Shown: positions 402 to 61,569 of the stretch, in pieces
Layout: every line of letters begins with the position of its first letter
How positions within the stretch are numbered: position 1 is the stretch's first letter
NCBI RefSeq assembly: GCF_006345805.1
Contig: NC_043000.1
Location: forward strand, 89,404,001 to 89,468,000
Direction: 5' to 3'
Source: Octopus sinensis
Taxonomy: Eukaryota
DNA length: 64,000 bases
Notes under the pieces: generated by a model
Told to the model about the DNA's origin: nothing
Database searches by the model: none
Seen by the model: the letters and a program-made list of their open reading frames with translations, nothing else
Program-made: the position numbers and the translations under genes

Positions 402-725
402 TGCAGATATTCTTACTAATGTTTAGTAAACGAACCATCACGTAAACAAATTCAAAACATTAGAGTTCGCCGGTTAAATATACTAAAACACGGAGTAAAA
501 GCAACCGTTCTGATAATTTTGGCCGCCATAGGTTTTGCAGTAAATCACTAAATCATCCATAACTTTTGTATTATCCTCTCAAATTACACCGAAATCTCAG
601 ACAATAACAATTAATATTGTATTTATTGTCTGTGAAAATTATAGAATATAAAACAACTTTGATAAAAACTTATATCTACTCTTCTGGCGAAAACAATGCC
701 GTTCTGAACATTTTGGCCGCAACTG
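1..725 (-). mobile_element. Tc1-like DNA transposon, 5' part (left TIR of IR/DR type plus transposase N-terminus); continues beyond window start
   Basis: The minus-strand terminus reads TA|CAGTTGCGGCCAAAATGTTCAGAACGG (TA at 726-727). A 22-bp motif is repeated at 505-526 and 699-720 (20/22 identical). ORF 39-401 encodes a paired-type HTH region (QIIKL..SIGSIANIVNKSKSVAHGIL..STGRPRKTTKRED..VKKDRFKTA). Confidence 0.85.
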
Positions 726-10825: not shown

Positions 10826-11206
10826 GGTGGAAAGATGGCAGAACAGTTAGCACGCCGGGCGAAATGCTTAGCGGTATTTTGTCTGCCGCTACGTTCTGAG
10901 TTCAAATTCCGCCGAGGGCGACTTTGCCTTTCATCCTTTCGGGGGTCGATTAAATAAGTGCCAGTTACGCACTGAGGTCGATATAATCGACTTAATCCGT
11001 TTGTCTATCCTTGTTTGTCCTCTCTGTTTTTAGCCCCTTGTGGGTAGTAAAGAAATAGGTATTTCGTCCGTCCTCACGTTCTGTATTCAAATCACGCCGA
11101 GACCGACATGCCTTTCATCCAACTGGTACTACATTTTACTGAAAATAAGTACCAGTTTATCACTGGGATCAAGGTAACTGACTTAATCCCTCTCCAGAAA
11201 TTGCTG
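10826..11206 (+). mobile_element. SINE family A composite: head, near-consensus body with alternative tail, then a much more diverged second body
   Basis: A-box-like TGGCAGAA and B-box-like GTTCAAATTCC are present. The junction AAAGAAATA|GGTATTTCG is at 11058. Confidence 0.85.
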
Positions 11207-22800: not shown

Positions 22801-24790
22801 ACTTATTTTACACAATGTGCGGTACATAAGAATTAAAGTGTGAGTTTTCAAATAATTTATTAACTCGCATAGTTTTATTTACAAATGTACATCCAACAAA
22901 CTAAAGGAATTTTCTGGATATAACTTACTAGATAATATGAAAGCAGTGCAAATAATTTAAATCATTGCATAGGATTAATATGTGTTACTCAACATAACAA
23001 TTTAAGGTGGACGGCTTTTTTCGAGTACTTAAATTTGAATTCGCCCATATTTTATTATTGTCAGCCCTAGAGTTCTAGAATCTTCGGCCAAACTGTTTGA
23101 CGAGGTAACTCGTACACTTCCATTGAAAATTGTCGCCCCAACCAGTCGTAATTGGTTGAGCCAAATTCACGTAGGCTTTTTATGGTGATACATTACTTTT
23201 TGGTTGTAGATTGGCCAAATCTGAAAGATATTGTTCAAATCTGAGCCGGGGTTTCGCTAAACATCTTTTAGGAAAGACACCTTTACAGAAAACAAAATAT
23301 TCACCATCCTGAATGCTCGTATTATCACATAAATACCCATTATTCTTTGTACACCACGCAATAGCTCACCAGCAAATATAGCCCTCATATTTGCCTGCCA
23401 AATTTCATCTTCTAACATACAAACCCTTCCAAAGCTCCCCTTCTCCACCAAACACGTATACACAACTTTTAAGTTTGAAGATATCTCTAGTAACCGCTGT
23501 CTTGTAGAAGAAATGCTTTGATATAGTCCCTTGCATCACAAAACAACACATCCGCTACCTAATTCCTGCTTTCAGCAAATTCTAGTATCTTTCATTCTCT
23601 ACATAAATCTATCGCAGTATATGTACTCCAGCAGTGTGCCTCAATACAAAGACAATATAAATTGTCCCATCTTTCTAATTAGATTCTATCAACCCACTAT
23701 CTTTATTACGATATAAACTATCTCATGCAACCGCACGATATATTTCTTCAGGTTCTTTGTCGTTGAAGTAGTCACCATTATGTTTGTTACAGGGAAAGGT
23801 CTTTCACTACTCAGAGCTTCCAGAAAAGCACTAGTATTTCATATGGGATTAGCAGTATCTGGTATCTAAGCTTGCAATGATGTCTGCGTATGGATTCCAA
23901 CTGCCTTTCAACGCTGCATTTCTGCACGCAAAGACGTGAATATCTTCGATCTGTATTCTCTATCAGCTGTGCTCTAAAATATAAATGGTGATGTCTATGA
24001 TACCATTTCTTCAGTACGCTAAATACTTCTTTATTTTTCATGAGATACCAATCTTCATTCTATACCAAGGCATCATTTACACGCATTCTGGACACCTTAC
24101 ATCAGATATACATAGATTCTATGTTCGAAATCCTTGGAAATATTCCCCAATGTAGACATGACAATTTAGTTTTATCAACAAGTACAAAAACCAGCCATTA
24201 CAAATTTCAAGGAACCAATTTCACAGAGTTATGTTACTCCTGCAGACAAAAGACAGCAAAATGCTCAATCACTGCAAATTCTGTACGCCACAAGATCTCA
24301 TGACGATCCCTCATATGTAATGTTGCCAAACGTTTGTACAAAAGACAAAATTATGACATCACATCCAGAAAATACTTGCACACGTATTAGTTGCCACATT
24401 TCATTATCATTAAACTGTGTGTCATGATAGGGTAGTGCTCGAATATCTGGAGCATTGCTATTGATTCGCTCAAAACATCTTAGATAGCATTAAAAAAATA
24501 GCAAACCGGCTAATGGTAAAGATTCTCGGAAGAACATTCTAATTCCACCAACCAATCTACTTAGCCTATTTTGTCACTACTATATTGATCTATACTCCAA
24601 TCAACTAGCAAACTTTGTATCCACTCCGCCAAAACTCACCCGATAAAATTCCTTTCCTCTTTTTGCCATTTCTATTGTCTTCCTAGTCCGAATAGCAACC
24701 CTCCACTAAACATTTTATTAAATTCTTCCTCCTGAAAATTTCAATGTCCATGATTTCATTCCTTTTACACGTTCTTTTAGATCGTTTACC

Positions 24791-26942
24791 AAAGCACAAA
24801 CACTTAAGTTGGTTTTGTTGGGATCCAACTCATCTCAGCTGGAGCAGACTTATGACCAAAGGTATTCCACCCGTGACCATTACGTGTTTTATGTCAGCAT
24901 AGTACATCATGGGGTAAATTAATTTAAAAGTTAACAAGGTTTGATTTGAGCAAAGTTAGCCTGGTATTTCTGGCACTTCGAATAACTAAAGAGAGAATAT
25001 GATTTCTCATAAGTTATACGGAGTTTCGTGATAAGTTGGCGTTGAGAAAAATCGCGTCCCCTAAATTATAATCAACCATGGCCACATCACTTCTCTCGAA
25101 AAACCAACAATAATCATAGCAACTATACTTCTAAAGATGAATATTAACAATATGGCCGAAGACTTTATAATAGATTAGCCAAAACTATTTGTACATGATC
25201 ATCAAGAATCCTAAACATAACTAATATTGCCCAATGTTCACACATCAATGCAATCACTACGTAGTAAAAGAAATGTCGAATTCTATGCCTATATGCACTC
25301 CCACACAATATAAAGAAATCAATTTCTGAATAATTTGACTTCACAAATTGCTGATAATAATCTGTTGCATGATTAACATCTACAAATATCAGTGACATTG
25401 AATTCTTGGTTTCATTGATTAATTACATTTAGCTACATTAAACTGACACGTTTCATAATATATATTATCTGCTACTGCTTTCGTTTATAGCAGAATCTTG
25501 CATTAATCAATATATTCACGTTTCTATGTGTATATGTCATGATATGTAAATATATAAATGTATATATACTATATTAAATCTCTGAGCGAGATATAAACAG
25601 CAGCAATACGGAATCATAACAATTAATTGCTAACCAAGTGTGGCGTCCTATACAGGACAGTGCTACTGACGTTTATAGTCCCAGGAAGACATCTCTTCCA
25701 GTTGGCTAACGAAAGGTAACACTGAAGACGTGTAGCCACCCAGAAACTTGAATCCGTGTGTATCACGTAAGGCTAGAGATGGTAGCGATGATCTCCCGTC
25801 GCAAATACTAATCAGACACAAAATACGTAAACTGACATCTGACTGTTTGAAGAAGACTTCAAAAGTAACTAGCAGTGACTTTTCTTGAAAAGGGACAAAA
25901 TCTGGCATCGTGGTATTATCAAGTACCAGTAGAAAAACGGTTTAGCCCCTAAGGACGTTCATGCTAACATGCTTACTACATTAGATGACAGTTCATCTTT
26001 ATCAGCAGCGCAAATTGAACAGATAAATTTAAGAAGGAAAGGGAGAGTCTTAAACATGACTCAAGGTCTGGACGTCCAGCAATTGCCACCACCGAGGGAT
26101 AACAGGCGATTGACTATAAATCAAATAGTCAATACTATTAACATACCGTATGAGAGAGTTCAGGATATTCTGCACAATGAACTTGGCATGACGAAGATCT
26201 CTGTTCGGTGGATCCTACGTCTTCTGACATCTGATCATCAGCTGATCAACCAGGCTGTACTTGTCTCTACTTGCAATAAAGCGATTAATTAGAAAATGAG
26301 ATATTTATTAACCTTTTTTCAGTACAACTTATTCAATATATGTATTTATCATTACTAAATCGATGTCTCAGTCTAGTAATCATTGAGTGTTTACTACAGC
26401 AGAGATTGTAATTTTTCGACGTTCCGCTTCACTACATGAACATATAATTAATTTTGTTACTGGGTATAATTAATTGTTTATGTTATGGGGGAAAGTCAAG
26501 TTCTCGCCTCATACACAATCATCATTGGTGTACAGGTGTTAATATACAGTTTAAGCTTCTGTGTTTGTGAGAAGCTAGTTGAATCAAGAATTAGGAAGAA
26601 CCGATAGGCTTCTGTTAATATTTAGTTTGTGTTAATTTTTAGATTTTAGATTGTTTTCGAAAGCGCAAACACATAAGTTGGTTTTGTTTGGATCCAACTC
26701 ATCTCAGCTGGAGCAGACTTATGACCAAAGGTATTCCACCCGTGACCATCATGTGTTTTATGTCAGCATAGTGCATCATGGGGTAAATTAATTTAAATGT
26801 TAGCAAGGTTTGATTTGAGCAAAATTAGCCTGGTATTTCTGGCACATCGAATAACTAAAGAGAGAATATGATTTTTCATAAGTTATACGGAGTTTCGTGA
26901 TAAGTTGGCGTTGAGAAAAATTGCGTCTCCTAAATCATAATC
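24791..26942 (+). repeat. 283-bp direct duplication (24791-25073 and 26660-26942)
   Basis: The two copies differ only by scattered substitutions; spacing is 1869 bp. Confidence 0.9.
25893..26250 (+). pseudogene. Mariner transposase N-terminal remnant (irritans-like)
   Basis: Frameshifted peptides DKIWHRGIIKY..GLAPKDVHANMLTTLDD, SRSGRPAIATT and RRLTINQIVNTINIPYERVQDILHNELGMTKISVRWILRLLT. Confidence 0.75.
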
Positions 26943-30028: not shown

Positions 30029-30249
30029 ACTAATGTAGGCTAAAATTTTTTTCGGGAAAAAAAATTTCATCAATGGACAGCATATCAAAAAATACCTTTG
30101 AAGGTTAAATTTATAAATAATTTACAATATAAGGGCAAAAGAAAAAATTCTAATGCCAAATATGCCAAAAAAGACAAATATTGTCGATTAACCATTATAG
30201 TATATGCGTCTCGAAATAAACTGATAGAAATTTCTAAAAAAATTCGTTA

Positions 30250-30309
30250 TTACCGTATTGGACCAATTTCGGAGTTAATTCATAAGAATTTTCCCCTCTT
30301 CAGCGGCAA
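30250..30309 (-). ncRNA. Type I hammerhead ribozyme motif (left arm)
   Basis: Reverse complement is identical over 60 nt to 31396-31455. Confidence 0.8.
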
Positions 30310-30400
30310 ATACGTGAGATATAAGTGAAATACTTACTCATACCCATGGAAAAAGCAAACACCAAGTCCTGAGCAGACCTAAGTACCTCAAAAATAATAC

Positions 30401-30768
30401 GCGAAATGCGTAGCTGTATTTCGTCTGCCGCTACGTTCTGAGTTCAAATTCCGGCGAGGTCAACTTTGCCTTTCATCATTTCGGGGTCGATAAATTAAGT
30501 ACCAGTTACGCACTAGGGTCGATATAATCGACATAATCCGTTTGTTTATCCTTGTTTGTCCTCTCTCTGTTTAGCCCCTTGTGGATAGTAAAGAAATAGG
30601 TATTTTATCTGCTGCTACATTCTGAGTTCAAATTCCGTCGAGATCGATTTTTGCCTTTCATCCTTTCGGGGTCGATAAATTAAGTACTAGTTGCGTAGGG
30701 GGTCGATGTAATCGACTGGCCCTCTCCCCACAAAATTTTGGGCCTTGTTCCTAGAGTAGAAAAGAATA
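30401..30768 (+). mobile_element. SINE family A dimer (partial head, tailed module, terminal body) inside the captured segment
   Basis: Begins GCGAAATGCGTAGCTGTATTTCG; internal junction AAAGAAATA|GGTATTTT at ~30599. Confidence 0.85.
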
Positions 30769-31395
30769 TATGTTTCTTTTCTGGTTCGCTTCAGTTTTTA
30801 TACGGGAAGTTTATGAAACAATATATGTGATACGAGAAGGATCCAAGAAACGAGTCATTCGAATTTGGTAGAACAGGAGCCAGACATTAGAGTGTGATCT
30901 CCCTCTGACCACATTCTGATATTGCTAAAAGTTATAGACGTAATAAGAATAATAATGAACGTGATTTTTGTTTTGGAACAGTGGATCTCGAAGTACATGA
31001 AACTATAAGAGTATGTATGTATTGAGTTGAAAAACTCTTTTGAATTTCAGCTATAACTATCCCAAATGGTTTTTCAACTTAATGTATAATGTTTTATGCG
31101 TTGCAGTCCAGTGGATTTGTTCCAAAATTAATCTCTAAAAGATTTATCACGGAGCTTTTGTCATAGACCTAGATGTATATGGTACAACCGAAAATATTAC
31201 CATATTTTTGTACTCATTCACATGGTTGGTCAGGTGGAAATGACTTCATAAGCTCCAGTTACGATCATGGTCTGAACCAGTGTACACAATTCGTTTCATA
31301 TTGAAACGTTTATCAAGGATGATGGATTGGAAGGCTATTATTTTTTAGGTACTTAGGTCTGTTCAGGACTTGGTGTTTGCTTTTCCCATGGGTAT

Positions 31396-31455
31396 TTGCC
31401 GCTGAAGAGGGGAAAATTCTTATGAATTAACTCCGAAATTGGTCCAATACGGTAA
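31396..31455 (+). ncRNA. Type I hammerhead ribozyme motif (right arm)
   Basis: UUGCCG-CUGAAGA-GGGG-AA-AAUUC-UUAU-GAAUU-AA-CUCC-GAA-AUUGG-U-CCAAU-A-CGGUAA. 6-bp stem I, two-part stem II, palindromic 5-bp stem III, AUA triplet. Confidence 0.82.
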
Positions 31456-31588
31456 TAACGAATTTTTTAGAAATTTCTATCGGTTTATTTCGAGACGCAT
31501 ATATTATATTGGATAATCGACAATTTTTGTCTTTTTTGGCATATTTGGCATTAGAATTTTTTCTTTTGCTCTTATATTGTAAATATAT

Positions 31589-31635
<47 letters not shown>

Positions 31636-33553: not shown

Positions 33554-34041
33554 CCTTTTTCTTTCTTAGATGATCAGTCAGCAGAATCTTTAGTGCATTA
33601 GACAAAACGTTTAGCTGCTGATTTTTGTGTCTGGTGTTCGGATGCAATGGAGACCAGCCTTCTGAGGTCATAAAATATAGCACTCATCGATATTTAGGAT
33701 TAAGTTGATTAATTATACCTGCCCAAAATTTTTACAGCCTCGTATCTATGATGCAAATAACTACTCTCCCTCTCCCTCTCTCTCTCTCTCTCTTTCTCTC
33801 TCTCCCTCTCCCACTTTTATTACTTCTCGTCAATTAATTCATCACTATCAGTAAGTAAATATTTTATCTCTCTCCGCCCAAATATCCTTCTAATAACGTT
33901 ATACATTTCACCCGCGCATCAAAATAATTTATTCCACTGCAAACATTTTATATCTTCTATTTGTTCCAATATCAGATAACCGCTACATTCATCAGCTGCT
34001 ACCTATTCACTTTTGCCTCTTAATATATGTTGCTTTTCTAA

Positions 34042-34063
34042 GACGGCGAGCTGACAGAATGTT
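34042..34063 (+). mobile_element. First 22 nt of a SINE family A head, forming the 5' flank of the Tx1 LINE
   Basis: GACGGCGAGCTGACAGAATGTT compares with the heads GTGGCGAGCTGGCAGAAACGTC (41611) and GCGGCGAGCTGGCAGAGTCGTT (reverse complement ending at 58116). Confidence 0.7.
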
Positions 34064-34215
34064 CGTGGTAAGAATTGCTGTTTCTTGGTGTTAATATTGT
34101 TAATAACTGTTGTTTCTTGTTAAACTGTTGAATAACTTAACTGTTGGAGTTTTCAATTGAAAACACTTAGTGCTTGTGGTAGCACGCGTTGTTCATTCCC
34201 CCTTTGCGGGGAAGA

Positions 34216-35340
34216 ATGTCGTCTAGCATGGAGCCTACCGTTGGAGCAGAAATACTTGTTTCTCCTGTTGAGAGGAGGAAATACATGTCCGGCGAGGAGC
34301 CAACTACAGACAAGGAAATAGGGGTTTCCCCCGCTACAAGAAGGAATAGCAGAGTGGATAATATATTTGATTTTTTTGGAGATGTGTCTGAGAGCTCGTC
34401 AGAACTTTCACCAGAAGAGTTTCCGACTTTGCCAGAGAACAAAGGCATTGTGTCGAAGAGAATAATTGATGTACCTAGCATCCAGATAAAACCAAAAAAT
34501 GGGAAAAAAAGTTTTGCGTTGGCTGCTGGGGGTGGAACCCGGCTACTGTCGACGAATAAAAGCGATGATGAAAATAACTGACAACGGTGTGAAAATTGAA
34601 CCTCCGCAAAAGTTATTACAAGAAGAAAAAATAATTTTCAAAACATATTGTCTACAAAAATAAAAATTGAAAGAATGTCAGAAGAGAAAATAGAAAAGTG
34701 CTTAAAGCCAATATGGGGCGACGTAGTATATCTGAGAAGAGGCAAAAAATTCGGAACGGTGGAAGTAAGGTTAACCAATAAAGAAATAGCACACAAGAAC
34801 TCAGTTGAAACGCTGAAAACGAACGACGTGGAGCTCATCCCCTATTGTATGGAGATGAAGACGTCCAGAATAAAAATTACAAGGGTCCCGCCAGAGGTCG
34901 ACCCTATGTGGTTGTTGGCGGCAGTCCTAATCAAAGGGGTAGAAAAAATTACTCTCCTCCAGGCTACCGCTACGGAAAACCCACGCTGGGATGGTCAACA
35001 ATTAATCTTCTCATTCAAGCGAACCCTAAAATAATTCAAACAATTCCCGAGACAATTGAGGTAGGGGAGGAGAACCTCGTGGTGTTTGTTGAGGGCTGAA
35101 AACCTCGATGTTTTTTATGTGGTCAATTAGGCCACATTCGAAGGAACTGCAAGGAAAATGAAGAAGAGGAGGAGAGGAGAAAAAAGACATAGAGGAAGAA
35201 GATAAAGAAGAAACAGATGAGAAAAAAACAACAAACAAAAGAAAAATACAACCAGCAACCCAGCCGAGAGCGGCGACTACTACAGAACAACGACCAAAAA
35301 AGACTGCCAGAAGAGAAAAGAAGAAAAAGGCATAATAGCC
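34216..35340 (+). pseudogene. LINE ORF1 (gag-like), frameshifted
   Basis: Pieces in ORFs 34189, 34648 and 34845. The CX2CX4HX4C knuckle CFLCGQLGHIRRNC is at 35109-35150, just after an in-frame TGA. Confidence 0.8.
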
Positions 35341-35719
35341 GTATACACTAAAGATACTGAGCTCATGAGAGACATTCAACTGATAAAGACTGTAAAAAAA
35401 AAGATAACCTTTCAGGGGAATTTATCAATTACGACATATATGAAGTCTCAAATAAGACTTATAGAATTCTACAAAATAAATACAGAAAGACTGTATCTTC
35501 ATTGAGATTAGATTTTAACAAGTCGATATTTCATGGATTACCAGCCCCGATCCCGCGAGAAAAGGAAAAGGTGGAGATTCCCCCCTCCACCTGATAATTC
35601 TGTGTCGGTGGTGAGACGGATTTTGACAAATCTATTTCCCAAGACCGTCCACCTCCGACCCTGGATCAAAAAAAGGTGGAGTGTCCCCCTCCACCGACAA
35701 TCCTGATTAAACAGGTAAG

Positions 35720-36830
35720 TTATGTCTATTCACATTGGTTGTTTAAATGTTCATCGCCTGTTGTCAAGCTGGAAGCAAGGACGCTTTCTAATGACATCAG
35801 GTCGAGAAATTTGGATGTAATTGTTGCAACGGAAACCCGGGTGAAGGGGCCAAGAGATCTGCTCCCCCTCCTGAACGGCTACGAGATACGTTTCTCCGAG
35901 TCGGGCGGGAGGTGGGGGTGGGGTGTTGGTCCTACTAAAAAGAAACGGGGTAGCCGAAAAAAAGTCGGTTTTTTCTGACCCAGAGGCAGGCTGGTCGTTC
36001 TCAACTTGACATTCAGTTGTGGCAAGACAATCAGGCTAGTCGCTATTTACGCACCAAACATTATTGGCCCGCAAACTGAATATTTTCGTGGCCTAGGAAA
36101 GTTCCTAGCCACGTCGCATTCACTAGTAGTATTAGGAGACTCTAATACAATATGTGCAGCACACACAGATTGTGTTGGCTCAAGCTCGAACATGAACAGA
36201 AAATGTAAAGTCAATTTCAGCTAGCAGATCCATATAGGTTGGAGCACCCGAACACTCCACAGTGGACGTGGTCAAATAGTGACGGGTCTACCAGAACATA
36301 TCTAAATAGGATTTTAATTAGAGAAAAAGATAAGTCCATAGTTGAGTGTCCACAGTTTTTTCTAGTCAGCTACAGTGACCACAAGATGGTTACCTGTAAA
36401 CTGACGGTAGCTAAGTTGCATAGACAGGGATCTGGCTACTGGAAACTCAATACGGCCCTTTTGGCGATTGAGGAGTACAGAAAGCGGATGAAGATGTTAA
36501 TACAGAGGGCATTAACAGGTACCATCATTAATAACAAATGGTGGTACGCCCTAAAAAGAGCCATCAAATGAGTCTATTAGGTTTAGCATAAGTTTAGCTA
36601 AGAAGGGACGTAAAATAGAGATGGTCTAGTTAAGGAACTAGAAGAAGCCTGGAGGACTGGTAATACAGACCAAGCGAGGGTGAAAAGACTGGAGTTAAAC
36701 CAGCATCTTGAAGCCCACCACATGGGAAGTATTACTAGAGCTAAGTTACGTGCAATGGGAAGTGAAGGAATCAAAGCCGCTGGATGGGCCCGAGTGGTGG
36801 AAGCTCGACAAGGAATAGTTTTCTATTCGG
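35720..36830 (+). pseudogene. LINE ORF2 N-terminus: APE endonuclease and linker, frameshifted
   Basis: Motifs LDVIVATETRV, IRLVAIYAPN, LVVLGDSN, WTWSN..TYLNRILI, SDHKMV and GYWKLNTALL. Confidence 0.85.
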
Positions 36831-36833
36831 TCT

Positions 36834-38765
36834 TTGACGAATCAAAATGGTGTCTTGGTAAACGAACCCGAGAAAATATGTGAGGTCTTTCGGGAGTACT
36901 TCGCCCAGCTGTTCGGGGATGACGGCGGTCCTGGTGGTGGGAGAGCCCTCGAGGACTTTCTTACCGGGATGCCGTTCCTCTCGGGGTCGGATGCGGAGTC
37001 TTGCGAAGGGCCAATCACATCTGAGGAGGTGATGGAGGCTTTGGCCGATTGTAAAGCGGGTAAGTCACCGGGACTTGATGGTCTTCCGTACGAGCTGTAT
37101 AAATGTATGCCAGACTTGTTCGGGCAACTACTGACTGACGTGTACGCGAACTGGAAACAGAATGGGTTTATCCCCAGATCTGTGCGTCGGGGAGTAGTGA
37201 CGTTGGTCAGAAAGGACCCAGACAAGGGGGACGTTCTAGAGAATTTCAGGCCCATCACTCTGTTAAACGCAGAAGTGAAGATTTTGGCCAAGGTTCTAGC
37301 AAAAAGGTTGGCGCGTGTCGCGAATGGTATAGTCGGGGAGGCACAGACATGTGCCATCCCAGGCAGAACCATTCAGGATACCCTCCATCTTATTCGCTAT
37401 ACCATAGAGAGGGTTGGTAATAAATCTGGCAAAGGTGGGGCATTGGTACATTTGGACCAGTCTAAAGCTTTTGATAGGGTTGACCATCGATACCTAGCGA
37501 CTGTACTTGCACGGTTTGGCCTGGGTCTTGGCTTCCTCAGGTGGTTTATCGCTTTGTACCACAACATTGACTCGATAGTTCGGGTGAACGGTTTCCTTTC
37601 GAAGCCGTTCTGCATCAGACGCTCGGTTCGTCAAGGATGTCCGCTTTCACCACTGTTGTATGTGATGGCTCTCGAGCCATTACTGCAAAGGTTGAGTGGC
37701 ATCCCGAGAGAACCAGGACTAGAGGAGTTTGTTACGGCTTTCGCGGATGATATCACTATCAGTGTAACCACAGTAGCATGCCTACGTGAAGTAGGTAAGA
37801 CTATTGAGGCTTACGAGGAGGTAGCAGGAGCAAAGATTAACCGGGAAAAGTCGGTCGGCTTGCAGCTCGGCACCTGGGTTGGCAAGTCGATGCCTTCAGA
37901 CAGTGTTGTTAGGCGCTGGACGGAGGGACCGGTTAAGTTGCTGGGAGTCTGGTTTGGACCAGGCCTCCAGATAGAGAAGAACTGGACGGAGATATTGAGC
38001 AGGGTGGCTGCAGTAGTCAAGACCTGTTCTTGGCGGTGGCTATCCCTGAAAGGGAGGGCGGAGGTGGCCAATGTGTTTATCGCATCGGTCATTACCTACC
38101 GCCTGACCGTCGTGCCCTGTCCGGATTCGTGGTTGACCAGGTTGGAGAGACAGCTCTTTCGCTTTTTGTGGAAGGGCAGGTCGCCACTTGTGAAACGCTC
38201 TGTCTGCAGTCAAAAGCCTTTAAAGGGAGGTTTAGGGATGCCTTGGTTAATGATGCGCAGACATGCGTTGAGGTTGAGGCACCTCTGGATTCTCCTGGAT
38301 AGTGAACGGGTGTGGTCTCCGCTAGCCAGACAAATGTTCCCTGAGTTCAAGAGTTTTTGCGAACAGGAAGCCTGGTGTTCTCGTAGACCGAGGTCGAGTG
38401 AGTGGCATAAAGAGTGCGGTAAGGCCCTCTTGCTGTTCCGGCGCTCGGGCAACGCCAGCGGTGGGGGTTCCACACAGATTTTATATAGTGGGTTGGTAGA
38501 GTCTGAATGCGACGATGGCCTGGGGTCGACTCTAGGTCTCGGATTTATTCAACTGGACAGCTTGTTTTATCGGACATTCGGGTTGAGAACGTTGGACAAC
38601 TTCCAAAAGTCCTTAACCTGGCAATGCTACAGAGGTGCCTTGCCCGTTTGGGATAAGCTCGCAAGACATGGTAAACGTCAGTCGCCGACCTGTCCAAGAT
38701 GCGGGGGGGACAGGGAAACCGTCCCTCACGCTATTGTTCAGTGTCCGGAGATAACTGAAATGTAG
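36834..38765 (+). CDS. Open 643-codon stretch of LINE ORF2: reverse transcriptase and C-terminal zinc finger (not an independent gene; no true ATG)
   Basis: Motifs KSPGLDGLPYELYK, FRPITLLN, DQSKAFDRVDH, VRQGCPLSPLLY, FADD and CPRCGGDRETVPHAIVQCP. It ends at a probable nonsense TAG, with homology continuing to ~39090. Confidence 0.85.
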   Translation: MTNQNGVLVNEPEKICEVFREYFAQLFGDDGGPGGGRALEDFLTGMPFLSGSDAESCEGPITSEEVMEALADCKAGKSPGLDGLPYELYKCMPDLFGQLLTDVYANWKQNGFIPRSVRRGVVTLVRKDPDKGDVLENFRPITLLNAEVKILAKVLAKRLARVANGIVGEAQTCAIPGRTIQDTLHLIRYTIERVGNKSGKGGALVHLDQSKAFDRVDHRYLATVLARFGLGLGFLRWFIALYHNIDSIVRVNGFLSKPFCIRRSVRQGCPLSPLLYVMALEPLLQRLSGIPREPGLEEFVTAFADDITISVTTVACLREVGKTIEAYEEVAGAKINREKSVGLQLGTWVGKSMPSDSVVRRWTEGPVKLLGVWFGPGLQIEKNWTEILSRVAAVVKTCSWRWLSLKGRAEVANVFIASVITYRLTVVPCPDSWLTRLERQLFRFLWKGRSPLVKRSVCSQKPLKGGLGMPWLMMRRHALRLRHLWILLDSERVWSPLARQMFPEFKSFCEQEAWCSRRPRSSEWHKECGKALLLFRRSGNASGGGSTQILYSGLVESECDDGLGSTLGLGFIQLDSLFYRTFGLRTLDNFQKSLTWQCYRGALPVWDKLARHGKRQSPTCPRCGGDRETVPHAIVQCPEITEM

Positions 38766-39333
38766 GCTTATGCTGAACATCTGTTGTCCGGCGAAGGAAG
38801 AGTACGGCTGTAGACTGAGTCAATCATAAAAATTGACCCACCGGGAGTTCTAACGAACGAAGGTAAGAATTGTTTTCTCACGGTTGTAGCAATAGCAAAA
38901 GAGGCAGTATGGAAGACTAGGATAAAAGGAATTAAGACAGGCAACTTTATCTCTGGTGACAATTTACGATCCTTTTTTTCTTTTCATTTGAAAAGGAAAC
39001 TGTGGCTGGAGAAGAGGTGTCTGTCAGAGTGTACGTTCCAAAAGAGATGGAAGTATGTTGCACGAGTGTTGTGCGTGCAAGGAACCGTGTGAATAGACGA
39101 GGAAAAAAAAAGGAAAAATAAGGTATCAGCGGTAGATCGGGGCTTGTGGGATCGGAGCGTAACTTGATCATCGCTTCATTTGTATTGTTTTTGTACTGTG
39201 TATTCCATTCGATTTTTATGTATTGTATTTTAGTTTTGAAGTCACATTTATTTAAAATCATATCGATTCACTGATCCCATCAGTTGTACTGTCCATATCT
39301 ATGTTTGGCCCCCGGTGGGCAATAAAGAAATTC

Positions 39334-39628
39334 GTATTTCGTCTGCCGTTACGTTCTGAGTTCAAATTCCTTTCGGGGTCAATAAATTTAGTACCAGTTA
39401 CGCACTGGGGGTCGATGTGATCGACTTCATCCGTTTGTCTGTCCTTGTTTGTCCTTTCTGTGTTTAGCCCCTAGTGGGTAGTAGAGAAATAGGTATTGCC
39501 GGGGTTGTATTTGCCTTTCATCCTTACGGGGTCGATAAATTAAGTACCAGTTGCGTGCTGGGGTCGATCGAATCGACTGGCCCTCTTCCCACAAAATTTT
39601 GGGCCTAGTTCCTAGAGTAGAAAAGAAT
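39334..39628 (+). mobile_element. Headless SINE family A dimer forming the 3' flank of the LINE
   Basis: Starts GTATTTCGTCTGCCG; tailed module, then a terminal body ending CCTAGAGTAGAAAAGAAT. Confidence 0.85.
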
Positions 39629-41479
39629 ATATGTTTCTTTTCTTGTTTGCTTCAGTTTTTATACGGGAAGTTTATGAAACAATATATTTCAATATGATAC
39701 TTGTAGGTTCCAACAAACGAGCTTCTACATGTCATTCGATTTTCGTAGGACAGCAGCCAGATATTAGAGCGTGATCTCCCTCTGACCACATTCTGATATT
39801 GCTAAAAGTTATAGACGTAATAAGAATAATAAATGAACGTGATTTTTGTTTTGGAACAGTGGATCTCGAAGTACATGAAACTATAAGAGTATGTATGTAT
39901 TGAGTTGAAAAACTCTTTTGAATTTCAGCTATAACTATCCCAAAGGGTTTTTCAACTTAATGTATATTGTTTTATGCGTTGCAGTCCAGTGGATTTGTTC
40001 CAAAATTAATCTCTAAAAGAATTTTTGAATTTATCACGGAGCTTTTGTCATAGACCTAGATGTATATGGTACAACCGAAAATATTACCATATTTTTGTAG
40101 TCATTCACTTGGTTGGTCAGGTGGAAATGACTTCATAAGTTCCAGTTACGATCATGGTTTAAAGCAGTGTACACAATTCGTTTGGTATTGAAACGTTTAT
40201 CAAGGATGATGAATTTGGAAGGCTATTATTTTTCTTTTCGGTAGTACTCTATACATGGGCGTAATAATTATACAAGACGTAATAAATTTGACTTTAATGC
40301 TTTTCATCGTATGTCTGTCAGATCAAGCAGATATATGATCAACAAAACAAACATTATGGCAGCACTATTTTTTTTTTAATTTTGAAATCTTTTGAATTAT
40401 ATAGCCAATTCAATTAGTTTATATAATTCTTCAATTTACAGTCATTATTCGTTTTGGCAAACGTGATTCTGTCTCCAATTCAAAATTTATGCGTCAAATA
40501 TCTAATTTAACTCGAATCATAATTAGATGAAATTTTAAGGAACGTAAATTATGATGCTAATGAAACCAATTTAACAGTAGAGAACTTTAGAGCTAATTTT
40601 GAATTTTAATATTATACTTTTTTAATTTTGCTAAAGATAATAATTATCAGAAGTTGTTTAATTAAAAATATGTAACTTAGCATTTGCATAACTTCTAGTG
40701 TATAAATGATAATAGATATATAGAGCTACATAGATACACATTAAGCAACCACGAAAATTGACTAAAATCGATATAGTATTTGAGAGGTAAATATAAAAAT
40801 ATCCGAGTCCAGTTTCGATCGGAAATATTTGTAATCTGGGATTTAGTTTTTCAGTCTTAAATCCAGTAGAATCTGAAATCTGGTTTTAACTGATCTAGTT
40901 TTAATCTGAAATCCAATACTGTACCAAATAGTTTTACTTCACGGCAACTTAAACAATGATGTAGTCGTGGCGGTGAGGATAAGAGGTTTGCTTCTCAAAC
41001 ATATGGTGTCGAGTTATATCTCGCAATGTTTGTTTCTACAAACTCAAGAAAACGAAATATGGAAGACGGGAACGTTTCTACGTCGAGCGTTCGTTCGTGT
41101 GAACGCGCGCACACACACGCACACACACATACTCATACTTATATCGATATATAAGGATAAGATCCAGGACAAGTGTAGTAAGTTGTAAGCTTTAAGCGGT
41201 CCGTGGCAGTTATAAAAAAAAAAAACGTCGACAGTGTACGATCAGCAAAAACAACAAATTATTGGCATCGAAGGTTACACACTTTTTCCCATAGAGAAGT
41301 TCCAAGGTATTTCGATAAGCTGCAAGTTTCTGTATAGCTCACGGTTAGCACATCAGAGAATCATCTACCTAAGCAACTTATGTAACCTGGATTTGCACAC
41401 TTTTAAATACGTGTACATATGTATGTTTGTGTGTGTGTGTGCGTGCGTGTGTGCGTGCGCGTGTTTGCGTGTGTGCACA

Positions 41480-42570
41480 CTAAATTCAGATACAATAGGA
41501 TATATAAATTCCACTTGCTATAAACAGAGCCATCACTCCAAAACTACCAATTACTATTAAGATACACACGGCTAATGCAATGAACATAACAGAAACAGGC
41601 TTACCTTAAGGTGGCGAGCTGGCAGAAACGTCAGCACGCCGGGCAAAATGCTTAGCGGTTTTTCTTTCTGAGTTCAAATTCCGCCGAGGTCGACTTTGCC
41701 TTTCATCCTTTCGGGGTCGATTAAATAAGTACCAGTTACGCGCTGAGGTCGATACAATCGAGTTAATTCGTTTGTCTGTCCTTGTTTGTCCCCTCTGTGT
41801 ATAGCCCCTTGTGGGCAGTAAAGAAATGGGTATTTTGTCTGCCGATACATTCTGAGTTCAAATTCCGCCGAGGTCGACTTTGCCTTTCATCCTTTCGGGG
41901 TCAATAAAATCAAGTAGCAGATGCGCACTGGGGTCGATATAATCGACTTAATCCGTTTGTCTGTCCTTGTTTGTCCTCTTTGTGTTTAGCCCCTTGTGGG
42001 TAGTAAAGAAATAGAAATAGGTATTTCGTCTGCCGCTACATTCTGAGTTCAAATTCCGCCGAGGTCGACTTTGCCTTTCATCCTTTCGGGGTCAATAAAA
42101 TCAAGTAGCAGATGCGCACTGGGGTCGATATAATCAACTTAATCCGTTTGTCTGTCCTTGTTTGTCCTCTCTGTGTTTAGCCCCTTGTGGGTAGTAAAGA
42201 ATTAGAAATAGGTATTTCGTCTGCCGCTACATTCTGAGTTCAAATTCCGCCGAGGTCGACTTTGCCTTTCATCCTTTCAGGGTCAATAAACTAAGTACCA
42301 GTTGCGTACTAGGGTCGATCTAATCGACTGGCCCCCTTCCCAAAAATTTCGTGGAATACAAAAGTAAGGCATGTGTATACCTCAGGATCAATTGATTTTG
42401 CCCTCTGTATGAAAAATCAGACTTTGAGCTCATCACCTGAAAATAACACTTTAAAATCTATTTCTGAAATATTCATCACCGTATGCGTTCGTTACTTTTA
42501 AATGTCCACGCGACATTCAAACGTGAGCCAGTATAAATTTTAATGAAATAAGTATTATTACCGTTATTAT
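41480..42570 (+). repeat. Interspersed repeat (same family as 54065-54710) split by the SINE A array
   Basis: ..GGCTTACCTT|SINE|GTGGAATACA.. here versus the uninterrupted CTAACCTTGCGTGGAATACA at ~54111-54130. Confidence 0.75.
41608..42350 (+). mobile_element. SINE family A head-to-tail array: one head, three tailed modules and one terminal body
   Basis: Junctions at 41829, 42020 and 42211 (period 191 bp), each AAAGAA..|GGTATTT. Confidence 0.9.
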
Positions 42571-42598
42571 TATATTATTATTATTATTATTATTATTA

Positions 42599-42899: not shown

Positions 42900-43485
42900 A
42901 ACGTTGGACAAAAAGCAAATTCGCACAGTTGTCTTATTCCAGTTCAAGCTAAGCCGAAAAGCTGCTGAAACAGCTCGCGATATCAACGATGCGTTTGGCC
43001 CATGAACCACCAATGAACGTACAGCACAATGGTGGTTCAAGAAATTTTGTAGTGGTGACGAAAGTCTTGAAGATTATAAGCGTAGTGGTCGGTCATCGGA
43101 TGTTGACAACGATCAGCTAAGAACTTTAGTCAAAGCCAATCCACGCACAACTGTTCAAGAGCTTGCTTCTGAATTAGACGTTACGTATACTACAATTACC
43201 AACCACTTGAAAGAGATTGGAAAAACAAAAAATATTTGAGAAATGGGTAACGCACGAATTGACAACCAAAAAAAAAACGCCATTTGAAGTCTCATCTGCC
43301 TTTTTTTATGCAACAAGAACGACCCGTTTCTCGACCGGATTGTGACTTGCGATGAAAAGTGGATTCTTTACGACAACCGGCGACACTCAGCTCAGTGGTT
43401 GGACGCCGACGAAGCTCCACGACACTTCCCGAAGCCAAAGTTGCACCAAAAGAAGGTCATGGTGACTGTTTGGTGGTCAGCGCGC
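42900..43485 (+). pseudogene. Mariner transposase remnant (cecropia/Hsmar1-like), 3'-truncated
   Basis: Peptides LDKKQIRTVVLFQFKLSRKAAETARDINDAFGP*TTNERTAQWWFKKFCSGDESLED..SGRSSDVDNDQL and [43 protein letters not shown]. Confidence 0.9.
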
Positions 43486-43977
43486 CGGTCTCATCCACAC
43501 CTTACCAGTAACATTAAGTGTGATTTCACACAAATGCTTACGCAAACATATACAGACGGACAGATAGACAGATATTGAGTGCGAGATGTTTTGGCACAGC
43601 CGTTTTTGCATCGCTAATTCGACACACACATTGGTTCTTTTAATGTTTCACTCGTTCTTGCCCCACATCTTTCTCTCTCTCTCACCCTCTTTCTCTCTCT
43701 TTCTCTCGCTCTCTCTCGCTCTCTCTCTCGTTTTCTCTCTCTCTCACCCTCTTTCTCTCTCTCTCTCTCTCTCTCTCGCTCTCTCTCTCTCTCTCGTTCT
43801 GTTTCACTTCGAGCTTTTGTGTGTGAACATAAATCACTCTGCGTGTATGTCGTGCTCAGTTAATAAAATGTAATGTCTCGTTCTCTGTCTCTCTTTCTCT
43901 CTCTCTTTCTCTCTCTGTCTCTCTCTTTCTCTCTCCCTCTTTCTCTCTCTCGCTCTTTCTCTCACTGTCCCTCTCTA

Positions 43978-51170: not shown

Positions 51171-52581
51171 CTGTCCGAATTCTGAATAAATAAAACAAGT
51201 GATCAAATATTATTTTTAATTGAAATTTAATCATCAATGTACTTTCCCTGACTATCTATGACTTCCTTCCATCTATTTACAAGCTTTTTAATCCCATCAA
51301 TGTAAAATTCTTTTGGTTTCAAAGTGAAGAACTCTGAAATGTTAGTTTCGACTTCCTCCTGGCTCGCGAAAGTTATGTCCCCCAAATAATTCTGGAAACT
51401 ACGGAGCAAATGGTAGTCTGAAGGAGCAAGGTCGGGAGAATAAGGTGAATGAGGAATTTTTTCCCAACCAAGCTCTTTGATCTTCTGTGATGTGATCTTT
51501 GCAGTGTGGTGTCACGCATTTTCCTGATGAAATATCACTTCTTTTCGATTCACTAAAGTGGGTCTTTTTTTCTTCAACGCTTGACTCAAACGCTCTAATT
51601 GCTGACAGTAGACTTGAGCATTGATTGTTGCATTAGGTGGTAACAATTCAAAGTGAATTACTCCTTTGCAATCCCACCAGATACAGAGAAGAACCTTTTT
51701 TTTCCATGAAGTTCCCTTCTCGGTTGTGGTTGAGCTTTTTCCCTTCTATCAAGCCACTGTTTACGACGTTTAACATTTCGATAGAAGATCCATTTTTCAT
51801 CACCAGTCACAAGTCTATCCAAAAAGGGTGAAATGAATTCGTGAGAATGGAGAGAAGAGCAGATGTCAACTCGGGATTTGCGGTTGCTTTCGGACAATTC
51901 ATGAGGCACCCATTTTCAAAGTTTAGGAACCTTTCCAAGTTTTTGAAGATGACGATGAACAGTTGTATGGTTTCAACTCATATTTTTTTTTTGCCAATTC
52001 TTCAACTGATAATACAGGATTTTCTTCAAATAATGCCTCAAGGAGCTTATCATCAAACTCAACTGGACGTCTTGTTCGATCTTCACCTTCAAGGCTGAAA
52101 TCTCCACTTCTGAATTTTGCAAACCATCTCCTGCAAGTTCTTTCACTCAAGCATTCTTTCCCATAAACTGAGTATATGTTTCGAGTCGCTTCGGCTGCAG
52201 AGTTCCCTTTTTTGTACTCATATGTGGCTTAAATGCTCTTTGGATATGTCCATGTTAGAAAGGATTTTAATCAAAGAAATTTTAATTCTGTTATTCTGTT
52301 TCCCATTAACTGAGTATATGTTTCGAGTCGCTTCGGCTGCAGAGTTCCCTTTTTTGTACTCATATGTGGCTTAAATGCTCTTTGGATATGTCCATGTTAG
52401 AAAGGATTTTAATCAAAGAAATTTTAATTCTGTTATTCTGTAAAATAATATTTAATTAGTTTAAATGTACACAAATGCATAAAAATAATTTTAATTCCAT
52501 TAGACTTTCTGAACTACTATTAAATTTCATTTATTTTTTTAAAATTAGGTAAAATCGGACAGAACTTATGGGATGACCTGA
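51165..52581 (-). mobile_element. Mariner element, decayed, with one intact TIR
   Basis: The TIR at 52551-52581 plus TA has reverse complement TA|TCAGGTCATCCCATAAGTTCTGTCCGATTTT; only TTCTGTCCGA remains at the other end (~51169). Peptides: RTCRRWFAKFRSGDFSL, FLDRLVTGDEKWIFY, YSPDLAPSDY and FYIDGIKKLVNRWKEVIDSQGKYIDD. Confidence 0.9.
52157..52441. repeat. 142-bp tandem duplication over the mariner transposase start
   Basis: Two near-identical copies start at 52157 and 52299. Confidence 0.9.
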
Positions 52582-54064: not shown

Positions 54065-54710
54065 CTATTAAGATACACACGGGCAATGCAACGAATATAG
54101 CAGAAACAGCCTAACCTTGCGTGGAATACAGGAGTAAGGGATCTGTATATTTAAATATCAACTGAGTTCGTCCACTTATGAAAAGCCATACTTTCAGCTG
54201 ATCAGGTAAAAATAACACGTTTAACATCTATTTCTGAAATATTCGTCACATTACTTCGTGTGCGTTCTTTACTTTAAACGTCCCTGCGACATTCGGAAAA
54301 AAAAAACTATCGTGAGCCAGTAACAATTTAAATCAAAGAAGTATTATTACCGTTATTAATAATAATAATGATAATAATCAAGTGGCGAGCAAGTTTACAC
54401 CTTTACACCTTTGTAGATAAAATATAAATTAAATTCAGATACAATAGGGTATTTAAATACCACTTACTACAAACAGAATCATCGCTCCAAAACCACCAAT
54501 AACTCACTATTAAGATACACACGGGTAATGCAGCGAATATAGCAGAGTTATTGGTGGTTTCACAGCGATGGCACTGTTTATAGCAAGTGGTATTTAAATA
54601 TCCTATTGTATCTGAATTTTATTTATATTTTACCTGTAAAGGTGTAAATTGCTAGCCACCTTATTATTATCATTATTATCATTAATAACAGTAATAATAC
54701 TTTGATTCAT
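54065..54710. repeat. 442-bp permuted monomer with ~40-bp terminal redundancy plus inverted partial copy (54547-54710)
   Basis: CTATTAAGATACACACGGG occurs at 54065 and 54507; 54547-54710 is the reverse complement of ~54330-54504. Confidence 0.75.
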
Positions 54711-57902: not shown

Positions 57903-58117
57903 GAATGTTTCCAAATTTTGGCACACGACAACTAATTTCGGGGAGGATTTACTGTTGATTACATCGACCCCAGTACTTGACTAGTACTTATTTTATCGAC
58001 CGGAAAGGATGAGAAGCAAAGTCGACCTCGGCGGTGTTTAAACTCAGGATGTAAAGACTGACGAAATGCCTCTAAGTATTTTGCTCAACGCCGTAACGAC
58101 TCTGCCAGCTCGCCGCT

Positions 58118-58155
<38 letters not shown>

Positions 58156-58360
58156 TAATAATTATCATTATTATTATTATAACAACAACAACAGCAATGA
58201 TATCACCTCAGTCATTTTTGGAGAGGGGAAAAATCAATTACATCAGCCCCTAATTTCACTGGTACTTAATTTATCGACCCAGAAAGGTTAGAAAGCAAAG
58301 TCGACCTCAGTGGAACTTAAACTCAGAGCGTAGCGGCAAGCGAATTACTGCTAAGCGTTT
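57903..58360 (-). mobile_element. SINE family A monomer (57903-58116) and a second partial copy (~58205-58360)
   Basis: The reverse complement starts GCGGCGAGCTGGCAGAGTCGTT and contains the GTCGACTTTGC and GGTCGATAAAATAAGTAC motifs; no alternative tail module. Confidence 0.75.
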
Positions 58361-58402
58361 AATAATAATAATAATAAGAAGAAGAAGAAGAAGAAGAAGA
58401 AG

Positions 58403-58962
58403 AATTGCCCTGATGCAGTACTAGGCACTGTTTCTCATGGCTTCAGATCTTAACTGATTGGAAGTGTTATCATGTACATTGTTTTGTCTTGGTATAAAAG
58501 ATGGGCTACAGCAAATATTCTGCTCAATACCACAGATTTGCTTGTCAGTTGTTTGACCTTAAACAGTTGACTATGTCCCTTAGTGGCTGACAATATATGC
58601 ATCTCTGATAATGAGCAGAAGTAGTGGGGGAGCATCATAGCCATGTGTTGAGAGGGATTCTTTAGGGCTTGAATAATTCACCTCTGGAAACATGGGTGTT
58701 TCGTTCAACATCCTTAAACAACCGTTCATCAGGGTCCTTTTGAGCAGGATGGGCTACCCAACCTGAAGAAAATTCTAACTGGGCCCCAACTGCAAGGTCA
58801 TGCGCTGTTTATCTTGATATGAGATCACTATGTCGTGCACATATGGTTGTGATGTATGTGTCTGGTGTACCCTTATAAGACGGGTAGTCATGATGGGTAT
58901 ACTGGGCTTCGTATATTTTACCCCAGTGTCACTTTGATGGCATGCACTGCTCTCTCACCCAA
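58403..58962 (-). repeat. ~555-bp non-coding interspersed repeat, copy 1
   Basis: Reverse complement of 60861-61417; flanked by AAT/AAG triplet repeats. Confidence 0.85.
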
Positions 58963-59130
58963 CAACAATAATAATGATGATTTTATTTATTGGCCACAAG
59001 GGTGAAAGATGAGGGTCACAATATAGAGACAAATTGTAGGTGTTTACATATAATAATGAAATGTTAAAAAACAGTATACACGGGTATACACTGGGAAAAA
59101 AAGAGACATACTATGCATAGCATACACAGG

Positions 59131-60805: not shown

Positions 60806-60860
60806 ATTAACTGCTTGGATTTATTATTTTATTATTATTATTTTATTATTATAAGTATTA

Positions 60861-61417
60861 TTGAGTGAGAGAGCAGTTCATACCATCAAAGTGACACTGG
60901 GGTAAAATATACGAAGCCCAATATACCCATCATGACTACCCGTCTGATAAGGGTACACCAGGCACATGCATCACAACCATATGTGCACGACATGGTGATC
61001 TCATATCAAGATAAACGACACATGACCTTGCAGGTGGGGCCCAGTTAGAATTTTCTTCAGGTTGAGTAGCCCATCCCTCAAAGGTCCCTGAATAACGGTT
61101 GTTTAAGGATGTTGAAAGAACCACCCATGTTTCCAGAGGTGAATTATTCAAACCCCAAAGAATCCCTCTCAACACATGGCTATGATGCTCCCCCTCTACT
61201 TCTGCTCGTGATCAGAGATGCACATATCGTCAGCCACTAACAGACATGCTCAACTGGTTACGGTCAAACAACTGACAAGCAAATCTGTGGTATTGAGCAG
61301 AATATTTGCTGTAGCCCATCTTTTATACCAAGACAAAACAATGTACATGATAACACTTCCAATCAGTTAAGATCAGAAGCCATGATAGCCAGTGCCTGGT
61401 ACTGCATCAGGGCATTT
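60861..61417 (+). repeat. ~555-bp non-coding interspersed repeat, copy 2
   Basis: Flanked on both sides by (ATT)n. Confidence 0.85.
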
Positions 61418-61499
61418 ATTATTATTATTATTTTATTATTATTATTATTATTATTTTATTATTATATTATTATTATTATTATTATTATCATTATTAATA

Positions 61500-61542
<43 letters not shown>

Positions 61543-61569
61543 TTATTATTATTATTATTATATTATTCA

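Follow-up and report, generated by a model that had tools for sequence, protein, structure and literature searches.

The DNA analysed here, referred to as the window, is a stretch of 64,000 nucleotides (nt) of Octopus sinensis (contig NC_043000.1, positions 89,404,001 to 89,468,000 of the forward strand) and is filled with microsatellite- and transposon-rich cephalopod DNA. At 41608-42349 it contains a four-unit head-to-tail array of an octopod tRNA-derived short interspersed element (SINE), SINE A, three units of which belong to subfamily A1. Tandem Repeats Finder (TRF) reported a 191-bp period with 3.5 copies and 92% matches at 41666-42329. SINE A is also present in Octopus bimaculoides and, in a diverged form, in Argonauta hians. 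A long interspersed element (LINE) of the L1/Tx1 type sits 2 kb upstream of the array. Six SINE units of the window and the end of this LINE are alike in a 3' tail of ~42 nt with a small hairpin, and all seven tails are followed by (G)GTATTT(C/T)(G/A), the sequence of a SINE head from nt 48/49 onward. The origin of this common junction is the subject of the present analysis; the coordinates of the features are given in Table 1.

BLAST and multiple alignment of all SINE A pieces of the window distinguished two unit types. A1 units end in ...TTAATCCGTTTGTCTGTCCTTGTTTGTCCTCTCTGTGTTTAGCCCCTTGTGGGTAGTAAAGAAAT, a tail also written as TTTAGCCCCTTGTGGG, and A2 units in ...GACTGGCCCCCTCCCC-AAAATTT(T/C)GGGCCTTGT(T/G)CCTAGAGTAGAAAAGAATA. 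An initial annotation of this DNA, made from the sequence alone, had noted that terminal bodies and monomers have a different tail, and the alignment confirmed that the terminal units and monomers of the window carry tails that are not of the LINE type. Two A1 variants, TAAATAAG and AAATTAAG, were found among the upstream units. An A-box-like motif (TGGCGAGCTGG, head nt 3-13, 9 of 11 consensus positions) and a B-box-like motif (GAGTTCAAATTCC, SINE nt 73-85) were read by eye; ARAGORN and Rfam returned no tRNA and no Rfam match for the window. Within the array a complete putative promoter is present only once, in the 5' part. Regeneration of an A-box/B-box promoter for RNA polymerase III (Pol III) by each insertion, as first proposed, did not hold: internal units start at nt 48 with the B box only and the 5'-most unit alone is complete.

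The pattern GCCCCNNGTGGGNANTAAAGAAAT, with up to three mismatches allowed, gave exactly seven matches in the window (at 11033, 30574, 39308, 39467, 41804, 41989 and 42180), with 0 expected from 100 shuffles. Six matches are A1 tails, and the one at 39308 represents the last 24 nt of the LINE. Over the last 36 nt of the LINE, 29 positions are identical to the SINE tail and 30 to that of array unit 1 (hand count), in agreement with the roughly 30 of 36 positions, with stem and loop kept, given in the initial annotation. Local alignment of the LINE and SINE tails extended over 42 nt with a score of 24, compared with a maximum of 14 in 5000 dinucleotide shuffles. The match is thus better than that of shuffled controls, since 0/100 and 0/5000 of these reached the observed values.

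The hairpin, a 4-bp stem with a 5-nt loop, is kept in 15 tails from Octopus and Argonauta. Stem cells are paired in 95% of cases across these 15 tails and in 10-50% when the 3' partners are slid. One stem pair, C:G in Octopus, is G:C in Argonauta, a compensatory swap, and RNA folding yielded the hairpin in all four tails tried. That the tail likeness and the common junction are mere coincidences in a repeat-rich window is extremely improbable. The sample is small and several junctions are not independent, but the shuffles effectively refute such an explanation, tail and hairpin are conserved between genera with a compensatory change, and the occupancy of the junction site differs from that of a control locus.

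Translated SINE frames used as protein queries led to one usable O. bimaculoides locus (76 kb) and to three short contigs. The 76 kb of O. bimaculoides contain a single A1 copy; its tail, GCCCCCTGTGGGCAATAAAGAAAT, has one mismatch to the window LINE, and the A1 tail there is 90% identical to that of the LINE. At locus L001 of Argonauta, ...CTGTGT(T)CGGCCCTTGTGGCTAATA(A/G)AGAAAT closes seven SINE copies and the 3' ends of two LINEs. Because the same tail and hairpin are found on LINEs and SINEs of both genera, A1 is a standard common-tail SINE without recent capture of a tail. It is a conventional, old tRNA-type SINE, the last ~42-55 nt of which (hairpin and AATAAAGAAAT) were copied from the 3' end of an L1/Tx1-type LINE, and this partnership is older than the split between Octopus and Argonauta. 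The idea of a SINE that had newly acquired its LINE tail was therefore dropped, as A1 is ancient, and free-standing copies of it are found in O. bimaculoides, in Argonauta and on two further octopod contigs. Scans with the tail pattern gave only single matches, taken as chance, in metagenome and prokaryote-genome collections and none in a viral set; no octopod DNA was retrieved from these.

As claimed earlier, the tailed modules and the LINE are followed by (G)GTATT at one point, and this is true of 7/7 tails: the 3' junction of the LINE lies at the same point as all six A1 junctions. In the window seven of ten such sites are occupied, compared with none of eight SINE heads in the 76 kb of O. 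bimaculoides (Fisher p = 0.004), where no dimer was present. The downstream partners belong to three subfamilies (A3-like, A2-type and A1). Since partner subfamilies and A1 variants differ, the junctions arose several times and are not copies of one composite. The seven junctions represent about four or five independent events: A1a with an old A3-like unit (10.8 kb), A1b with A2 (the ancestor of the 30 and 39 kb dimers), one or two events in the array, and entry of the LINE into A1b.

Such diversity bears on the explanation that one or a few dimeric SINE masters, with the relic of a LINE tail inside them, used the A2 tail to spread, with array growth only by unequal crossing-over or replication slippage and a coincidental position of the LINE. 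LINE-derived middle bodies are known in SINEs (PMC5786205). The terminal units at 30.6 and 42.2 kb also both read GCCGCTACA at nt 60-70, where O. bimaculoides A2 monomers have GTCTTTACG; units 2 and 3 of the array are tandem duplicates, and the dimers at 30.4 and 39.3 kb go back to one event. We nevertheless consider this explanation quite unlikely. It does not account for three downstream subfamilies and two A1 variants upstream, or for a 10.8 kb partner far older than its A1 unit; no dimer accompanies the eight heads of O. bimaculoides, and the probability that the LINE came to lie by coincidence at exactly this nucleotide is, by rough estimate and not by computation, ~1e-3 to 1e-4.

Two junctions at least represent insertion, at the DNA level, into SINE copies that were already present, in line with what the initial annotation had supposed. 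The first is that of the LINE. A target-site duplication (TSD) of 17 bp, 16/17 matching, brackets head nt 1-23, the LINE and the dimer together, and a paralogue of the dimer that lacks the LINE is found at 30.4 kb. Regions 30416-31345 and 39334-40233 are 85% identical over 959 bp and have a 3' flank in common that includes the TSD ATATATGTTTCTTTTCT. Because the TSD lies outside the head fragment and the dimer, and because a LINE-free paralogue exists, the LINE entered later, into a SINE already in place. Judged from its two junctions, it appears to have replaced head nt 24-47, with its 3' end abutting nt 48/49. A LINE 3' untranslated region (UTR) that itself contained the SINE, by 3' transduction or as a 5'-truncated LINE copy at 30.4 kb, was considered and rejected, as head nt 36-47, and not LINE sequence, precede GTATT at 30.4 kb.

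The surroundings of the 30.4 kb copy are themselves unusual. An inverted repeat of ~295 bp (30105-30399 and 31336-31600, 85% identical) has as its exact centre the 936-bp copy of the 39.3 kb dimer and flank, and the right junction of this copy has 10 nt (TATTATTTTT) in common with the arm of the inverted repeat. The 39.3 kb locus, 9 kb away, seems to have been the template for break repair at this palindrome, which left the local copy there.

The second case is the dimer at 10.8 kb, which is an old/young/old age mosaic. Five of the 14 consensus differences of its A1 unit fall in nt 1-25 (Fisher p = 0.010), while nt 26-231 are young, with 14 of 17 CpGs kept, and the downstream unit is decayed. 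The boundary between old and young sequence (nt 21-25) coincides with the 5' junction of the LINE after nt 23. Integration of an A1 cDNA between nt 47 and 48, joined by homology to the upper strand of the target, broken near nt 21-25, would give a mosaic of this kind. A TSD was looked for at this locus and none was found.

Both cases argue for defined nicks and against chimeras formed in one step at the RNA level. In the latter explanation, reverse transcriptase (RT) that copies a SINE RNA halts at or near nt 48, at a processed 5' end or a strong stop in the tRNA-like head, and switches to an A1 or LINE RNA at its 3' end, so that the composite is made in one event and lands anywhere. Template-switch chimeras with a fixed 3' end of the upstream partner are well known, such as U6/L1 (PMC4476161, PMC5729268). 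One TSD brackets the whole 39.3 kb dimer, the 41.6 kb array, full-length and RNA-like on its 5' side, came in as a single piece, and GGTATT could be a microhomology with the 3' end of the acceptor RNA. The junction of the LINE, however, is later than the SINE, as seen from the TSD, the retained head nt 1-23 and the LINE-free paralogue. A single cDNA cannot give the old tip, young middle and old downstream unit at 10.8 kb, and a fixed truncation point of the downstream partner is atypical of template switching. RNA-level chimerism is therefore judged unlikely as the general origin of the junctions. Besides insertion into resident copies, the chief competing origins are template-switch chimeras and LINE-derived middle bodies, but neither fits the locus of the LINE or that at 10.8 kb as well.

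In the 41.6 kb array, the proposal that part of it grew by tandem duplication was borne out for units 2 and 3, which are 97.4% identical and have private variants and the AGAAAT duplication in common. Units 1 and 2 are 91% identical; neighbours do not share private mutations here, nor in the dimers. That units 2 and 3 stem from unequal crossing-over of unit 1 with unit 4 is disfavoured, as the 3' half of unit 1 has seven private changes versus one or two in units 2 and 3. Unit 1 has a 12-nt deletion directly past the GGT of its own target site (41655-41675; GCGGT-TTTTCT-TTCTGAG). This deletion makes a T5 run that would stop Pol III, and is perhaps the scar of an aborted event or simple decay. 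Later growth of the array may have combined further A1 integration, unequal exchange and the duplication of units 2 and 3.

The array is inserted in a copy of a host repeat, R. Another copy of R, at 54.1 kb, runs uninterrupted across the array site (...CCTAACCTTG directly followed by CGTGGAATACAGG). Repeat R also covers 54066-54660, where the 54.4-54.66 kb copy forms a long hairpin similar to foldback elements or miniature inverted-repeat transposable elements (MITEs), with the terminal motif TATTAAGATACACACGGG present twice.

The LINE was placed in the L1 superfamily on the basis of the Pfam domains RVT_1 and zf-RVT and of the nearest solved structure, human LINE-1 ORF2p (E = 5e-46; R2 at 1e-21). 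Assignment to the Tx1 clade is plausible. Pfam searches with the ORF1 and endonuclease pieces of the window LINE gave no match; relatives of this LINE carry Exo_endo_phos. The closest proteins, from Argonauta and from contigs, are only ~60% identical. L1-Tx1 families are active in O. vulgaris (PMC13282606). A second L1-type LINE with RVT_1 and zf-RVT domains lies at 62091-64000 on the minus strand and is cut by the end of the window. A (TTA)52 microsatellite (61416-61567) is located downstream of its last open reading frames (ORFs), and this LINE is maybe a microsatellite-associated relative.

Weighing these data, we lean, with confidence only just beyond an even balance, to the reading that the LINE and A1 integrated repeatedly in the window into resident SINEs between TTAGC and GGTATT (nt 47 and nt 48), building arrays. 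The LINE machinery would start target-primed reverse transcription from a nick at this position, where a 3'-terminal (G)GUAUU-like flank of the RNA may pair with the target, analogous to the CTATT of Argonauta ends and targets. A second break ~22-25 bp upstream, after head nt 23, would lead to replacement of target nt 24-47. In the case of a SINE, the 5' end of the cDNA would be joined inside the homologous head, giving a seamless product that resembles a tandem repeat of nt 48-231. Each insertion would leave a site downstream and, if long enough, add another, so that arrays could grow, to which tandem duplication (units 2 and 3) and block copying would contribute. We only infer the priming by microhomology, the geometry of two nicks and the 5' join by homology.

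CTATT follows seven of the nine Argonauta 3' ends seen, LINE ends included, and CTATA one more; the equivalents at the Octopus junctions are GAAAT-AG-GTATT (A1) and GAAAT-TC-GTATT (LINE). Because the 13-14-nt Argonauta TSD contains the junction pentamer CTATT, the junction bases belong to the target and, presumably, to the 3' flank of the RNA. The AATAAA motif is situated 8 nt from the LINE end, so LINE transcripts must include downstream flank, and A1 copies ahead of GGTATTT(T) could yield RNAs ending in GGUAUUU. Read-through guides sharpen targeting in R1/R2-type elements (discussed in PMC4494074); a similar effect here is hypothetical. A more far-reaching version is that the LINE/SINE pair has evolved homing to a single bond within the promoter-carrying heads of its own SINE superfamily, with a pair of nicks ~24 bp apart, perhaps guided by an inherited GGUAUUU... 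extension, each hit recreating target and guide, and that arrays grow by retrotransposition and not by recombination. This we regard as possible but doubtful.

A number of observations weigh against repeated integration at this site. Outside the window, 0/3 A1 tails are joined at GGTATT. A free-standing A1 of O. bimaculoides has an 11-bp TSD (TATAAGGCCTA), the free-standing A1 tail of an ENA contig is followed by a 5'-truncated A2 fragment joined elsewhere than at nt 48, and the A1 copy of a Logan contig is free-standing. Ends of LINE relatives were at the site in 0/3 cases; Argonauta ends adjoin unique DNA and another adjoins an (ATT)n run. One LINE copy of this genome was examined, numbers are small overall, and the SINE consensus was made from few copies taken from the window itself. 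In the array, units 2 and 3 carry CpG-site variants of unit 4 in their 5' halves, which fits unequal exchange too. No TSD was found at the array when looked for, and the terminal A2 unit stops at ...AAAAATTT(CG), ~35 nt before the end of the tail, with 2-4 nt of microhomology. For these reasons the array, or a shorter precursor, seems to have arrived as a block by a non-canonical route, the candidates being internal priming, endonuclease-independent insertion and templated break repair.

Of the earlier claim that site-specific machinery of the LINE targets SINE A, one shared integration point in the window was retained, but an obligatory choice of this site was not, given the tails and sites outside the window. 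The targeting is a preference of young copies in the window and not a strict specificity of the LINE family. Free-standing copies diverge by ~7-11% or more and window units by ~4-6% from a consensus that comes from the window itself; homing could be a recent trait of one lineage, an argument that is weak since the consensus is window-derived.

Other material from outside the window was evaluated as well. An apparent partial duplication in the only A1 copy of O. bimaculoides was judged to be an assembly artefact and no dimer, with the same ~57-nt sequence on both sides of a gap of 10 N (L004 40780-40800). The remaining contigs with LINE relatives end short of the tail or are without the motif, and a large ENA contig with a related RT was judged not to be octopod, because no SINE A was found in it. 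At L004 65991-66620 (minus strand) of O. bimaculoides, three A2-type SINEs stand head to tail with few bases between them (...GAATATAAG next to GCGGCGAGC...), and L012 has a similar pair. In Octopus, one SINE seems often to have inserted beside the 3' end of another, an arrangement different from the nt-48 junction.

Table 1. Position and strand of the SINE A, LINE and host-repeat features in the window.
Feature	Position	Strand	Remarks
A1a unit, full head and tail (11033-11056)	10826..11057	+	upstream unit of the 10.8 kb dimer
Old decayed downstream unit, from GGTATT	11058..11200	+	~70% identical to consensus body; 5/11 CpGs kept; A3-like end
LINE-free paralogue of the 39.3 kb dimer with 580 bp of 3' flank	30401..31345	+	head continuous over the site (GCGAAATGCGTAGCTGTATTTCG)
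5' TSD copy (ATATATGTTGCTTTTCT, 34023-34039), AAG and SINE head nt 1-23 (34040-34063)	34023..34063	+	left part of the LINE-split SINE
L1/Tx1-type LINE	34064..39333	+	ORF1 region from ~34.18 kb
LINE endonuclease region, frameshifted	~35.6-36.6 kb	+	within the LINE at 34064..39333
LINE RT ORF	36834-38765	+	643-aa open frame; Pfam RVT_1 and zf-RVT
LINE hairpin tail ending the 3' UTR	39290-39331 (+TC)	+	last part of the LINE at 34064..39333
Right part of the split SINE	39334..39643	+	A1b unit from GTATTT (nt 49), tail 39467-39490; A2-type unit; 3' TSD copy ATATATGTTTCTTTTCT, 39627-39643
Flanks of the array	41481-41607 and 42350-42590		host repeat R
Array unit 1	41608..41828	+	full 5' end: AAG and head nt 1-47 with A box; A1a-type body; LINE-type tail 41804-41827
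Array unit 2	41829..42019	+	SINE nt 48-231, B box only; LINE-type tail 41989-42012 and extra AGAAATA
Array unit 3, tandem duplicate of unit 2	42020..42210	+	tail 42180-42203 and AGAAATA
Array terminal unit	42211..42349	+	from GGTATT; A2-type 3' part; ends ...CCCAAAAATTT; ~35 nt of A2 tail missing; no TSD
Paralogous empty site of the array, in the other copy of host repeat R	54066..54130	+	...CAGAAACAGCCTAACCTTG directly followed by CGTGGAATACAGG
Two SINE A monomers, older subfamilies, non-LINE-type tails	57954..58348	-	in trinucleotide microsatellites; GGTATT-equivalent sites empty

An inverted repeat of 615 bp with 91% identity (58364-58978 and 60845-61455) encloses ~1.9 kb and adjoins the pair of old SINE monomers, located in (TAA)n/(AAG)n runs. 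Remnants of mariner/Tc1-type transposases were located at 51230-52228 (minus strand), 43006-43575 (plus strand) and 42-422 (minus strand). The copy at 51-52 kb is 89% identical to a Logan-contig protein, and a search with the mariner transposase for octopus contigs gave short Logan contigs and insect genes only. A 142-bp unit is duplicated at 52157-52441 with 99% identity. Direct repeats of 299 bp (24775-25073 and 26644-26942), 94% identical and 1.9 kb apart, may mark the two ends of an element; no Pfam domain was matched by the ORF that they enclose.

About one tenth of an Octopus genome consists of SINEs (11.6% in O. vulgaris; PMC13282606), which expanded specifically in the octopus lineage. 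If preferential landing in resident SINE heads is true, much of this growth would be routed to DNA that is already dead, a safe-haven strategy. It would also account for the SINE dimers and arrays that complicate repeat libraries and the estimation of ages, and would provide a natural case of L1-type retrotransposon targeting by RNA-target pairing and fixed nick geometry. If it is not upheld genome-wide, what is left is a LINE/SINE pair of the ordinary sort and a group of dimers clustered locally.

LINE/SINE pairs with a common 3' tail follow the model of Ohshima and Okada, with recognition of the stringent type as in eel UnaL2/UnaSINE1. A1 is an ordinary member of this group, with a tRNA-like head, a conserved body, a LINE-derived hairpin tail of ~42-55 nt and dispersed copies, some with TSDs. 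Landing in earlier copies of their own kind, with clusters as the result, is also seen for Alu elements, which insert into A-rich parts of resident Alus, and for the Zepp LINE clusters of Chlorella. These differ in that an A/T-rich nick preference or nesting is involved, without a single bond in a promoter-bearing head and without seamless arrays of units.

In template-switch chimeras (U6/L1, SINE-SINE; PMC4476161, PMC5729268) and LINE-derived middle bodies (PMC5786205), as here, a full upstream copy is combined with a 5'-truncated downstream retroposon and the LINE tail becomes internal. Compared with template-switch chimeras, the downstream breakpoint here is fixed and at least two junctions bear signs of insertion into pre-existing DNA. 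Several LINEs of the Tx1 clade are target-specific, namely Tx1L in Tx1D (Xenopus), Keno (U2 snRNA), Kibi and Koshi (microsatellites) and Dewa (tRNA-Leu spacer) (PMC4494074, PMC3706591). The window LINE resembles them as an L1-superfamily element with an endonuclease of the apurinic type, seen in its relatives, and with a defined position in a repeat; one relative adjoins (ATT)n. It differs in that a single copy of the window LINE is at the site and the Argonauta relatives are in unique DNA.

The closest known case is that of SINEU with the Tx1-Mar LINEs in crocodilians, where SINEs and Tx1 LINEs have common preferred positions in Mariner-N4_AMi, with tandem insertions, for 13% to nearly 100% of copies depending on the subfamily (Kojima 2015, PMC4494074). 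Target specificity was defined there by more than 20% of the flanks (PMC4494074). In both systems a SINE and its L1/Tx1-type partner LINE prefer one position in an abundant transposon, and sequential hits give tandem SINEs. Argonauta copies with the LINE-type tail have TSDs of 13-16 bp, and at A. hians L001 14832-15309 two full-length LINE-tailed SINEs are in tandem around a common 14-nt TSD (CTATAGGCCAGCAC / CTATAGATCAGCAC), which is the sequential-insertion picture of SINEU-3 (PMC4494074). The preference of SINEU has been documented genome-wide and the one described here within one window; SINEU heads are derived from snRNA, whereas those of SINE A are tRNA-like. The crocodilian elements enter a Mariner DNA transposon, to which they are unrelated, and a TSD is enclosed between tandem copies, whereas here the target is the head of the own SINE superfamily, with seamless joins, ~24 nt replaced and no TSD. 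Preferential landing in SINE heads, if true, would extend the SINEU/Tx1-Mar precedent from the targeting of another transposon to the targeting of itself.

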